In this document: positions 17,901-20,900 of the stretch, one piece after another
How the letters are laid out: the number at the start of each line of letters is the position of its first letter
How positions within the stretch are numbered: the first letter of the stretch is position 1
Origin: Octopus bimaculoides
Taxonomy: Eukaryota
Reading direction: 5' to 3'
Assembly: GCF_001194135.2 (NCBI RefSeq)
Contig: NC_069001.1
Span: forward strand, 39,733,940 to 39,797,939
Length of the DNA stretch: 64,000 nucleotides
Position numbers and translations under genes: made by a program
Notes under the pieces: generated by a model
Seen by the model: only the letters and a program-made list of their open reading frames with translations
Databases searched by the model: none
Told to the model about the DNA's origin: nothing

Positions 17901-20900
17901 AAACTCCTTGGATTCTGGTTTCTATCAGGTGTGGAACATATTTTTCATGTTGAAAAACTCTATCAAAAGGTTTAATTCTGCCTCATAAATAAATTGACCA
18001 CATAAGATAACAAAATAGTAATCTTATTAGAAATATCAATTCATAGTATATAAAACTGAAAATAAAGCTTTTTGTACAAAACAAAAGAGTAACTAAACTT
18101 CAGTTCAGGTACAGGTATGTGGCAAAGCAATTTGCTTCATAGCCACATAGCTGGGTTCAATTTCACTGTCTGACACCGTTGAGCATCTTCTACTGAGACT
18201 TTGGTTGACCAGTTCCTTTGAATGAAGGTTAGTAGACAGAAATAGTGTGAATTCCATTGTATATATGTGGATATGTATGTGTGTATAATATATAAGTGGG
18301 AAACAAGGTGGGAAAAATAGTACTCGAGTACCAGAGGTAGAGTAATATGTTTTATTATTAAAGCTGCAAAAATATCACAAAAAAAACTGCTACTCAGAGT
18401 TTCACGTTCCAGTTCGTCAGGCAGATTCTGGATCACATCTGCCTGACAAACAGGAATGTGAAACTCTGAGTAGCAGTTTTTTTGTGATGTTTTTGCAGCT
18501 TCAATCATAAAATATTTATATAAACTTAGATTTATATATGTGTGTGTGTGTGTGTGTGTGTGTCCATGTAAATCCCTTTGTCAAAAACCATAAGTTACCA
18601 GTTCTTTGAAATAAGCTACAGACTTAAATAAATTCTAGGATTTGTTTAATTAACTAAAACCATTGACGGCTGTACTCCAGCATGGCCACAGTTGAATAAC
18701 TAAAACCAGTAAAAGCAAAGCAGAATTCATTTAGCAGGAAATAATTCTAACCAGAGAATCCAAAAACCTTTACAAGTTTTTTTAACACTTTTTCTCTGGC
18801 CCCTGGATGCTATGTTACTCTAACCAGTTTACAAAACTCTTGTCTTTCATTAACCCCATTTTCATATACAAATGATGCAAACAGTTGTAGTGTGTAATTA
18901 TAATACTGTTATGGCTAAGTGATTTACAAGTTTCCTTTACAAATATGTGGCTTTGAGTTCAATCCTACCAACAGAACCTTAAGCATACATATTCCATCCT
19001 GACATCAGGTTGACCAAAGCATTGTGAGGGAAATTTGGTAATACAGGGCCTAGTTGTAGAGGATTCCTGCTTTGAACACTTCATTATAATACAATAATTA
19101 GATAAACTAGATGGGTTGGCTCATAATTTGGGCTGTTCCATAATTACAGACATGGATGCAACTTTATGGCTCCAGTAAGGAGAATTCCAAATGGATTTAT
19201 AGCATCTTCATTCATTCTGTGACCTTGAAGCCTTTAACAATTTTTTTGGTTGATTCCATTGTCTTTGGGTTAGGGTTAGGCAAGTGAATTCTACCATAGT
19301 CTGAAGTCAATCAAAGTCTTGTGACTGAAAGTTGCTAAATAGAAACCGTCTTTAAGCTCCCCTTGGGAAGTACTACTGTTCCTCTTCTTGTATGGTAAAT
19401 TTAGTCTTAAACCAGTTGAACTCTACCAAACTGGCCTCTGGCTGCCTTTAACAGACTCCAACTGTTGCAAGTATTTGAGTCGGGTCACATTCTAGAAGTT
19501 CTTTCCTCCCTTTCAAGTTTTAGACTTTTGGGTAAGGGACAACAGGACTTCTCTTCTACTTTTGTCATGTAAACAAGATTTAAATGACAAATATATATAA
19601 ACTTCATTGAAATATATATTAGAAAAATTATAATCTAGTTAATTTTAGTTTTCACTTTGAATCTAAATTAGAAAATAAAAGTATTACATATTTTATGTGA
19701 ACATTTCGATTAAAACTGTTTATATTGTTTTTTTCATACATACATACATATATACATATGCATAAGTATATATATATATATATATATATATATATATTGT
19801 GTATGTTAGCATATATATATGTGTGTGTGTGTATATATATATATATATATATATATATATATATTGTTTCCCAGTATCTTATCAGCTATAGTTAGCAATG
19901 TGCATCAGCAGAAAAGTTAATTCTGCAATTTGTATGCACTTTCTCTCTCTTTAATGATATATGTATACTAGGATACCTACACATATATATTGTGTGTACC
20001 ACTAACCTACACTAATGCTATACGTTATCAAACATATATACCAGTTACTCTAATATTGTATCTACCAAGTCTGTCAGGGGTTCTTTGTCACTCTGTTCTC
20101 CTACATCAGATCTTATTGCAAAATCAAGAATTGATCTCTTTATTAAGGAGTCAAGCAATTAGAGAAATTCTAGTAGTTTTTAAGGAGCTTTTCACAATCT
20201 GAAAGGTAGCAGCTTTTGGTACTTTAGAGATCTTAAAGCACTTACTGTTTATTTTTTTTTTCAAAGCTGTGATGTTCAACAGTCAAAAAAGAAAACCAAA
20301 CTCTTCTCATGATATTTGGAACGTTGTTAATTCTTGGCACAAAATATTATTTGATTTCAATAAACTGATTCTCTGTGAAATAACATCTTTAATTTTGTGC
20401 ATCGCTTATTACTTATACATATGTGTGTGTATGTACATGCAGAGATATGCACACATACATATGTACATGTAGGTATATACACACTTGTAAATGTTGTGTG
20501 TGTGTGTGTGTGTGTGTGTGTGTGTGTGTATATATATATGTATATATATATATATATATATATATATATATATATATATATATATATATATATATATATA
20601 TATATACATATATATACATACACATACACACACACACACACACACACACACACACACACACACACACACTCACATGCACACATGTAAATGTTTGTACATC
20701 TCAGCTTTAGCCAAACAAATTCTTTGATTTCTCCAGTTTTCTGGGTATCTTTCAGTTCCAATATTGGCTTTACCTATGTTGCTTCTGCTGTCATTTCTTT
20801 TCCTTTTTTTTTTTTAAACTAGAAAAAGTTGTTGAGGAACTAGGTTTTGTTTTGCTTGTTCTAGGATGTTAGGCAACTGTAATCTTCTTTCCTCTCGGAT

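Follow-up and report, generated by a model that had tools for sequence, protein, structure and literature searches.

In active Penelope-like elements (PLEs) a hammerhead lies in the repeat between tandem units, where, as a dimer formed through its palindromic helix III, it presumably processes multimeric transcripts. Minimal hammerheads occur in the pseudo-LTRs and 3' regions of PLEs, and 'dual min-HHRs close to each other but in opposite strands' have been described (Cervera & de la Pena 2014, PMC4209133); a passage of PMC6765202 cites Lunse, Weinberg & Breaker 2017 for the same PLE motifs. The minimal hammerheads of metazoan PLEs show only low activity as dimers, and for single motifs self-cleavage was not detectable (PMC4209133); in the anole, the cut site of the PLE hammerhead coincides with no read ends (PMC11167929). 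PLEs also have an insertion bias for microsatellites, and an inverted 5'-truncated copy can adjoin the forward copy (Craig et al. 2021, PMC8557442). Such complex insertions may carry an optional 30-40-bp 'tail' at one end (PMC8557442), and purified PLE protein cleaves and extends both DNA strands (PMC11167929).

Animal non-LTR retrozymes are short non-coding units with type I hammerheads that come from PLE pseudo-LTRs; they form direct tandem repeats of ~170-400 nt and circular RNAs (Cervera & de la Pena 2020, PMC7229834), and they are reported to be depleted from introns (Li et al. 2026 preprint, 10.64898/2026.07.22.740005). The amniote hammerheads HH9 and HH10 (RECK, CTCL, DTNB; de la Pena & Garcia-Robles 2010, reviewed in PMC6155905) are retroelement-derived type I motifs lying in sense orientation within introns; their core is intact, their helices are stable and make loop-loop contacts, and they are deeply conserved.

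The element analysed here is a fold-back sequence in an intron of a calcium-channel gene, carrying one minimal hammerhead motif in each arm, and it lies in a 64-kb stretch of DNA (the window, by which the whole stretch analysed is meant). The motifs share with the minimal hammerheads of PLEs the type I topology, the short open helix I, the CUGANGA...GAAA core and the GUA cut site, as well as a near-palindromic helix III of 9 nt which, being unable to close in a monomer, implies dimers. Both also occur as dispersed copies, single or in pairs, that truncated elements have left, opposite-strand pairs included, and both lie near the element 3' end in a TA-microsatellite neighbourhood. They differ from these hammerheads in lacking an adjoining RT+GIY-YIG ORF and in that one copy has A8 together with C3, which is not the covarying U3-A8 variant; the differences in the helices are given below.

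With the complex tandem and inverted PLE insertions (Evgen'ev & Arkhipova 2005; PMC8557442) the pair has in common an apparent inverted 5'-truncated copy abutting the forward copy, a layout found at full ORF scale in one of the PLE loci compared here (L016), where an inverted ORF copy abuts the forward one. Unlike in those insertions, both copies in the window are ~80 nt long, end at the same truncation point and make up a compact 169-bp hairpin. The likeness to retrozymes extends to the short non-coding unit and its type I hammerheads, but the element is a single inverted pair and, unlike the intron-depleted retrozymes, it is intronic. The likeness to HH9 and HH10 consists in the sense, intronic position of a type I motif of retroelement descent, whereas the sense motif of the window has a mutated core and weak helices and is buried in a hairpin.

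The fold-back element and its host gene

The host gene lies on the plus strand, and its best named homologues are 'voltage-dependent calcium channel type A subunit alpha-1', that is Cav2; in the search with the Cav exons the closest named match, at 80% identity, is a gastropod protein. As the original prediction had stated, the element lies between two alternative exons of this gene (Table 1), which are in phase and paralogous, with 50% amino-acid identity to each other.

The inverted repeat, 169 bases long, is made up of the arm pairs 18380-18426 / 18437-18483 (47 nt, 94% complementary) and 18347-18385 / 18477-18515 (39 nt, 90% complementary), and when aligned with its reverse complement the element shows an 87% match over 165 nt. 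It is separated from the microsatellite on its left by ~50 nt of non-repeat sequence (18296-18346). The direct-repeat family D1, with copies at 18260-18284 and 18533-18557 (84%), lies on both sides of it. No second copy of the element was found within the 64-kb window by blastn-short, a 21-nt match at 36392-36412 being a chance match without a hammerhead. A protein search with the element's open frame yielded no candidate, and the ORF at 18137-18508 (minus strand) is not on record. Scanning metagenome, genome and viral collections for an exact pattern of the hammerhead's 3' half found nothing; none of the collections searched gave sequence near to this animal, and from them neither another copy of the element nor a full-length PLE with exactly this 3' end was retrieved.

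Table 1. Features of the fold-back element and its surroundings (positions in the window)
Feature	Position	Strand	Basis or remark
Alternative exon A, Cav2, domain IV S2 region	17113..17223	+	111 nt, AG/GT borders; tblastn + sequence
TA/TG microsatellite left of the presumed insertion	18260..18295	.	Direct-repeat family D1 + sequence
Whole fold-back element	18347..18515	.	Two inverted ~80-nt arms, 10-nt centre; inverted repeats, self match, hairpin MFE
T-rich 3' tail, minus-strand copy	18347..18386	-	Mirror image of 18477-18515
Minimal type I hammerhead motif, antisense to gene	18387..18424	-	Core CUGACGA intact
10-nt centre UCUGGAUCAC, hairpin loop, putative junction of two 5'-truncated copies	18427..18436	.	
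Minimal type I hammerhead motif, pre-mRNA strand	18439..18476	+	Core CUGACAA, A18448 = position 8
A in place of catalytic G8	18448	+	Unpaired opposite C18415 in hairpin; CpG -> CpA relative to other arm
T-rich 3' tail, plus-strand copy	18477..18515	+	Arm end 43 nt past cleavage site, adjoins TA-rich sequence
TA-rich sequence + (TG)n microsatellite directly right of the presumed insertion	18516..18565	.	
Alternative exon B, paralogue of exon A	21284..21418	+	135 nt, AG/GT borders; tblastn + sequence
Decayed PLE ORF remnant	48506-49078	-	Same window
Decayed PLE ORF remnant	51206-51764	-	Same window

The two hammerhead motifs

The plus motif reads CUGC / CUGACAA / ACA-GGAA-UGU / GAAA / CUCUGAGUA / GCAG, in which C3 is 18443 and H17 is A18472, and its predicted cut falls between 18472 and 18473. 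The minus motif, running from 18424 to 18387, reads CUGC / CUGACGA / AC(U)GGAA(C)GU / GAAA / CUCUGAGUA / GCAG and would be cut between 18391 and 18390. Compared with the core C3 U4 G5 A6 N7 G8 A9...G12 A13 A14 A15.1...U16.1 H17, the minus copy is complete and the plus copy has a single failure, A18448 instead of G8. With a descriptor of our own, these two motifs and no others are recovered from the window, the plus copy only with position 8 left free; in a Markov-1 simulation of 64 kb on both strands, 0.045 intact-core motifs are expected, and 0.395 with position 8 free. The inverted repeat and the descriptor thus confirm the fold-back with two head-to-head minimal type I hammerheads that had been predicted, and the two cores are as they had been described, intact in antisense and altered in sense.

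Three helices are in register around the core, all of them weak. Helix I has 4 bp in both motifs (CUGC/GCAG). Helix II has 3 bp and a GGAA cap in the plus motif; in the minus motif a U·C mismatch leaves just 2 bp with a 6-nt loop, and so the GGAA-capped stem II formerly assigned to each arm holds for the plus copy and fails for the minus copy. The 4-bp helix I and the 2-3-bp helix II, closed by an A-U pair at 10.1-11.1 with no extra nucleotide between A9 and 10.1, set the window motifs apart from other PLE minimal hammerheads; the usual G10.1-C11.1 pair and the unpaired nucleotide after A9 of the published consensus (PMC4209133) are absent from them. The metagenomic PLE clade departs from that consensus as well, having U·U or, at two of the loci (L015, L023), the same A10.1-U11.1 closure. 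In helix III, ACUCUGAGU, 4 bp surround a single central U, whereas a monomer closes 3 bp over a triloop. The sequence is self-complementary at 8 of its 9 positions and recurs at L018, L022 and L023, and in the MFE structure of the cofold helix III is paired between the two molecules. There is one sense motif on each strand, so that neither has a same-strand dimer partner.

Probable kinship to the hammerheads of PLEs

Covariance model R1 was made from nine hammerheads flanking RT+GIY-YIG ORFs. This training set shows compensatory changes in 10 of 14 pairs, and 88.9% of its cells are paired, as against 35-46% in slid controls. Model R2 is a conservative version that leaves out the training sequences sharing the window's helix III. 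The minus arm scores 27.3 bits (E 6e-5) with R1 and 22.9 bits (E 0.002) with R2, the plus arm 24.6 bits (E 3.5e-4) and 21.8 bits (E 0.004), and with both models the two arms rank first and second in the window (128 kb searched). Held-out members of the metagenomic PLE clade reach 42-56 bits versus 22-27 bits for the window arms, and therefore the kinship is with PLE hammerheads generally and not with that clade. The selection of the clade involves a mild circularity, because the pattern used to reach it required the window's helix III, and R2 removes this only in part.

A scan with hammerhead covariance models, proposed in the original prediction as a check, thus gives a positive answer with R1 and R2 and a negative one with Rfam. 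Rfam returns no hammerhead match in the whole window at gathering score, and none at E<=10 in slices of 261 nt and 53 nt, HH9 and HH10 included. It also misses clear PLE hammerheads used as a control (L017, L015, L007), and its negative result is therefore uninformative for this subclass. What Rfam does return are weak miRNA-precursor matches (MIR172, 26.9 bits; mir-745, 22.9 bits), far under their gathering scores (70 and 62 bits); they reflect hairpin shape only.

The comparison loci are labelled as PLEs because of their RT and GIY-YIG motifs, the matches of the L023 ORF and the tandem layout of ORFs and hammerheads. The L012 ORF hits no Pfam family even at E<=10 and gives only noise against PDB; its RT (YRDDG), CxC and GIY...YIG motifs are visible, and a neighbouring 903-aa ORF in L023 has GIY-YIG and RVT_1 matches on record. 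At these loci the hammerhead lies 50-140 nt past the ORF stop, and tandem ORFs are flanked by hammerheads on both sides. PLE units end in or beside (TA)n ~35-45 nt past the hammerhead cut site, as seen in L019, L015 and L025, where the distance is 35-38 nt. In the window each arm stops 43 nt past its own cut site, beside TA-rich sequence and (TG)n. Each arm therefore matches a PLE 3' end, with a hammerhead, ~43 nt of T-rich tail and TA-rich sequence in this order. The attribution to PLEs made in the original prediction is upheld because of this likeness, the covariance-model matches and the decayed PLE ORFs in the window. No RT+GIY-YIG ORF lies beside the window hammerheads, the nearest PLE ORF remnants being ~30 kb away, and the copies must therefore be 5'-truncated to ~80 nt. 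Downstream of the remnants, after 51206 and after 48506, no hammerhead is visible.

Origin of the element

We consider it likely that the element goes back to a single PLE retrotransposition and has since decayed, that it is not a working ribozyme and that no function is needed to account for it. The target of the insertion would have been a TA/TG-rich part of the intron that separates the two alternative Cav2 exons. Either arm would represent the last ~80 nt of a PLE unit, that is its own minimal hammerhead and then the T-rich tail, two severely 5'-truncated copies meeting head to head, each with its 3' end facing away from the junction. Such joining may be expected if reverse transcription is primed from both strands of the target DNA, or if the enzyme folds back on the strand it has just made. 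After the insertion the arms would have drifted ~9% apart, and in the pre-mRNA the element would just form an imperfect hairpin of ~80 bp. Several points go against an origin from a PLE: the failure to retrieve another copy of the element, the low scores and the mild circularity described above, and the lack of a hammerhead downstream of the remnant at 51206. In addition, both arms are truncated at the same point, unlike the usual unequal truncation, and the ~50 nt at 18296-18346 are left without explanation. By eye, CTCTA...TCGAGTACT in that stretch looks like GCTCYA...TTGAGCWCT, and a 'tail' was considered there; the idea was dropped, as an nhmmer profile covering the beginning of a following PLE unit has no match in 18296-18346.

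The symmetrical arms of equal length and the short loop would also suit a fold-back DNA transposon, a MITE or some other non-PLE palindromic repeat, in which the hammerhead-like string would have arisen by chance. The simulated 0.045 motifs per window, obtained with a loose descriptor, amount to thousands of chance motifs per genome, and the short helix II without the usual G10.1-C11.1 pair, the Rfam result and the lack of an adjoining RT ORF could be read in the same way. We nevertheless regard such an origin as unlikely, since both covariance models place the arms first and second in 128 kb, the distance from the motif to the arm end and to TA-rich sequence is that of real PLE units, and the 9-nt near-palindromic helix III is typical of PLE hammerheads. 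Furthermore, the flanks …GAGTAAT / TTATATA… show no clear target-site duplication (AT-rich, single copy), and PLE remnants are present in the same window.

The change at position 8 and the predicted hairpin

The arms differ at seven positions, two of which are CpG decay in the plus arm, one of them the change from G8 to A; the observed/expected CpG ratio of the window is 0.25, a strong depletion. When seven substitutions are placed at random, the sense core alone is struck in 26% of trials. Selection is therefore not needed to explain the loss of G8. The suggestion that the sense copy may have been inactivated because it would cut the pre-mRNA is not supported: CpG decay and this chance rate suffice, the sense copy could hardly fold or dimerise, and the antisense copy is itself weakened in helix II.

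In the pre-mRNA the predicted hairpin has an MFE of -108.1 kcal/mol (z -21.5), and the hammerhead folds have -2.1 and -0.4 kcal/mol, neither of them being the MFE of the isolated arm. The long hairpin thus competes with the hammerhead fold, as had been foreseen. Because of these energies, the published low or undetectable activity of PLE minimal hammerheads and the anole read ends, the element does not appear to be a working ribozyme, and self-cleavage after H17 in the native context would be opposed by the modelled thermodynamics.

A hairpin of transposon origin could have been co-opted as a structured RNA (as long dsRNA recruiting ADAR or, in the manner of a small-RNA precursor, Dicer, or in the splicing of the alternative exons), the hammerhead being irrelevant. 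The z score, the position between alternative exons in an intron of a neural ion-channel gene and the weak likeness to miRNA precursors would fit such a role. This is improbable, however, given that the miRNA scores lie so far under threshold and that the ~9% divergence of the arms, with its mismatches uncompensated, is what drift predicts.

Adenosines in A·C mismatches of long dsRNA are a favoured ADAR context, and those with C as 5' neighbour are not preferred. In the MFE base-pair table A18448 forms an A·C mismatch with C18415 inside the ~80-bp duplex, so that its editing is conceivable, and this one premise of the editing switch suggested in the original prediction holds. In that proposal ADAR would convert A18448 to inosine and restore C3-G8, whereupon the sense hammerhead would cut the intron and bias the choice between exons A and B; the location between two alternative exons and the domesticated intronic hammerheads of amniotes (PMC6155905) speak for it. 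That an edited base would lead on to cleavage is implausible in terms of both energy and structure, and as a whole the switch is very improbable. The hairpin outweighs the hammerhead fold by the energies given above, and the complementary arm is transcribed first. Helix III requires a second sense copy, of which there is none on the gene strand, helix I has just 4 bp, and loop-loop contacts are absent; even intact PLE minimal hammerheads barely cleave (PMC4209133). Promiscuous editing of the long dsRNA would presumably also reach the paired core residues A6, A9, A13, A14 and A15.1. The 5' neighbour of A18448 is C, and CpG decay accounts for the A itself. The fuller version, in which A18448 is edited in neurons and partial restoration of C3-G8, helicase or chaperone help and pairing of nascent transcripts lead to a cut in the intron between mutually exclusive Cav2 exons, is extremely improbable.

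Implications

For the annotation of invertebrate genomes the practical point is that Rfam misses this subclass of hammerheads, and that a small custom model made from ORF-flanking examples recovers it. As a decayed PLE insertion, the element is one more truncated copy with minimal hammerheads among thousands in animal genomes, and as such it has little significance. It does lend itself to asking, concretely and at little cost, whether PLE hairpins in introns undergo editing, and whether a host pre-mRNA is ever cut by a minimal hammerhead. If the editing switch were true, it would be a naturally occurring ribozyme under the control of editing, with an influence on exon choice; editing-dependent cleavage, only if shown, would matter for ribozyme biology and for ion-channel splicing.

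Architecture and setting of the element

The fold-back element lies between exons A and B of the Cav2 gene, which is oriented along the + strand of the window. These exons are paralogues (50% identity across 36 aligned residues) that encode the domain IV S2 region of the channel and, given their phase and borders, they are presumably mutually exclusive. Assignment to the Cav2 type follows the names of homologues, the closest named relative being a gastropod protein with 80% identity. The window has a GC content of ~31%, a CpG observed/expected ratio of 0.25 and an excess of TG and CA (about 1.3), a CpG depletion that fits a heavily methylated gene body. 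A short-read scaffold is indicated by its N runs (1381 in total), seen inside or beside TG/TA microsatellites (e.g., ~3.7-4.0, 7.8-8.1, 12.6-12.95 and 25.7-26.3 kb).

The original prediction described an inverted repeat with a minimal type I hammerhead motif in each arm, and the window sequence and the inverted-repeat comparison agree with it, the element aligning to its reverse complement over 165 nt with an 87% match. The minus (antisense) copy does have the core CUGACGA, but its helix II contains a U·C mismatch and has just 2 bp. A18448 takes position 8 (hammerhead numbering) of the plus (pre-mRNA strand) copy, and cleavage is predicted at 18472/18473 (+) and 18391/18390 (-).

Features of the element and of its surroundings in the window
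Feature	Position	Strand	Description
Exon A, 37 codons	17113-17223	+	AG/GT borders, in phase
Inverted repeat, entire element	18347-18515	both	repeat search and sequence
Outer arms	18347-18385 / 18477-18515		90% complementarity
Inner arms	18380-18426 / 18437-18483		94% complementarity
Minus-copy hammerhead	18424->18387	-	CUGC/CUGACGA/ACUGGAACGU/GAAA/CUCUGAGUA/GCAG
Centre between arms, 10 nt	18427-18436
Plus-copy hammerhead	18439-18476	+	CUGC/CUGACAA/ACAGGAAUGU/GAAA/CUCUGAGUA/GCAG
Exon B, 45 codons	21284-21418	+	AG/GT borders, in phase
Decayed PLE-type ORF remnant (a)	48506-49078	-	residues ~314-597, including NVIWNNPPYN motif
Decayed PLE-type ORF remnant (b)	51206-51764	-	residues ~516-709: CxC linker, GIY-YIG region, C-terminus

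Covariance models from Penelope-like loci

A loose hammerhead descriptor matched just the two motifs of the element in the entire window, and Markov-1 simulations give a chance expectation of 0.045 intact-core motifs per 64 kb. The Rfam hammerhead models had zero matches, either at gathering score across the whole window or at E<=10 on 261-nt and 53-nt slices, a negative that carries no weight because textbook minimal hammerheads from genuine Penelope-like element (PLE) loci escape this library too; custom covariance models were therefore built. A pattern scan of metagenome contigs, whose pattern included the helix III of the element, led to L012 and L015, two loci whose tandem ORFs harbor reverse-transcriptase (RT) and CxC plus GIY-YIG motifs and are followed, about 90 nt past the stop codon, by a hammerhead. 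The L012 ORF has 1274 protein relatives (protein search, E<=1e-10), and ten loci fetched via such proteins provided nine distinct ORF-flanking hammerheads, with strong covariation (compensatory changes in 10 of 14 pairs) and 88.9% of cells paired, against 35-46% in slid controls.

In the window, the two best matches of R1, the model built from these nine, are the arms, with 27.3 and 24.6 bits (rough E-values 6e-5 and 3.5e-4). Since the search pattern shared helix III with the element, R2 was built to lessen this circularity from seven sequences, none of which carries that helix, and the arms again rank first and second, with 22.9 and 21.8 bits (E 0.002 and 0.004, likewise rough). Held-out clade members reach 42-56 bits and the unrelated minimal hammerhead L007 30 bits; as the arms score below both, the window motifs are classed as PLE-type hammerheads of a lineage distinct from the metagenomic clade.

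The third-best match of both models, 41894-41942 (-), scores 20.0 and 16.9 bits (rough E-values 0.008 and 0.09). Its sequence, CUGAUGA...GAAACAUGUA, has an intact core, a CAUG palindrome, a helix I of just 2 bp and a poor helix II; its surroundings contain no inverted repeat, and it may represent a solo minimal hammerhead that has decayed, or a match by chance. The string CTGATGAAGAAGCATGAAACTCTGAGTA, identical in four metagenome contigs (L005, L009, L010 and L011) and devoid of helix I, is probably not a hammerhead.

The metagenomic loci (L012 and L015-L025, some of them TARA Oceans scaffolds) represent a large eukaryotic family of ~700-aa RT + CxC + GIY-YIG ORFs, found in these loci as tandem units (2405 bp in L012). 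The L012 ORF has zero Pfam family matches, and its relatives are recorded mainly as matching HTH_animal, rather than RT or GIY-YIG. Every unit carries a type I minimal hammerhead 50-140 nt past the stop codon, usually with U·U at 10.1-11.1, and a twice-repeated hairpin-like motif, GCTCYA...TTGAGCWCT, about 45-110 nt past the cut site.

Origin of the element

Most likely, the element is a head-to-head PLE insertion that was truncated and carries minimal hammerheads. The attribution to PLEs, already proposed in the original prediction, is supported by the ranking of the arms by R1 and R2, by ORF remnants in the window and by the arms themselves, each laid out like a PLE unit's 3' end. According to published work, PLE pseudo-LTRs house hammerheads near the 3' end, and microsatellites are favoured insertion sites. 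In L019, L015 and L025 the unit ends in or beside (TA)n, about 35-45 nt past the cut site, and in tandem arrays a TATAT junction leads to the next unit. The arms of the element stop 43 nt past the cut site; the right side adjoins TA-rich sequence and (TG)n, and a TA/TG microsatellite lies ~50 nt outside the left arm. The left flank (18296-18346) is not matched by a profile of the region where the next PLE unit starts. A perfect 12-nt palindrome, GTACTCGAGTAC (18320-18331), is found in this ~50-nt stretch between microsatellite and left arm.

A head-to-head layout like that of the element occurs at full ORF scale in L016, and Schistosome genomes contain 'dual min-HHRs close to each other but in opposite strands' (PMC4209133). 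In work with purified PLE protein, the two target-DNA strands were both cleaved and extended (PMC11167929), a reaction that could generate two outward-facing 3' ends, presumably joined at their truncated 5' ends. The host genome does harbor PLE-type elements: both ORF remnants, interrupted by stops and frameshifts, have 28-45% aa identity to the metagenomic RT + GIY-YIG family (E 1e-7 to 1e-10). Neither remnant has a visible hammerhead downstream, and remnant (b) meets a CA/TA microsatellite ~55 nt on.

Compared with published PLE minimal hammerheads, the element has a very short, A-U closed helix II and a helix I of 4 bp, and one copy combines C3 with A8; unlike the published consensus, it has no adjacent ORF. 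It shows no resemblance to conserved amniote intronic hammerheads. A retrozyme is ruled out, as the copies are inverted and not tandem.

Position 8, folding and editing

It had been suggested that the sense copy may have been inactivated because it would cut the pre-mRNA. Over about 79 nt, seven substitutions and one indel separate the arms, and two of the seven affect the sole pair of CpGs that survive in the minus copy (C7pG8 to CpA, and the helix II CpG to TpG). With seven substitutions scattered at random over both arms, 26% of trials changed the sense core but not the antisense core, and 66% changed at least one core position. CpG decay and this 26% suffice, so that selection is not needed to explain A18448.

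The hairpin predicted for the + strand RNA is worth -108.1 kcal/mol (z -21.5) and competes with the hammerhead fold, as anticipated (-2.1 kcal/mol for the plus copy; -0.4 for the minus copy); in isolated arms, the hammerhead structure is not the minimum-energy fold. Proper pairing of helix III, ACUCUGAGU, needs two sense copies, and one is present per strand. For metazoan PLE minimal hammerheads, single motifs without detectable cleavage and dimers of low activity have been described (PMC4209133), and none of the RNA-seq reads of an anole PLE stop at its cut site (PMC11167929). With a far stabler hairpin, no same-strand dimer partner and such feeble published activity, it is concluded from the predicted folds that neither copy would be a working ribozyme in the context of the element.

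A18448 lies within the long dsRNA stem, as originally noted, and in the hairpin base-pair table it is unpaired opposite C18415, so that its editing is conceivable. This same position favors the proposal that edited A18448 allows sense hammerhead cleavage and biases exon choice, which is nevertheless highly improbable: the -108 kcal/mol hairpin, in which the complementary arm is the first to be transcribed, would have to melt, a dimer partner would have to be found, and the paired core adenosines would have to dodge promiscuous editing.

The main by-product of the analysis is methodological, in that a small custom model recovers a hammerhead subclass that Rfam misses.
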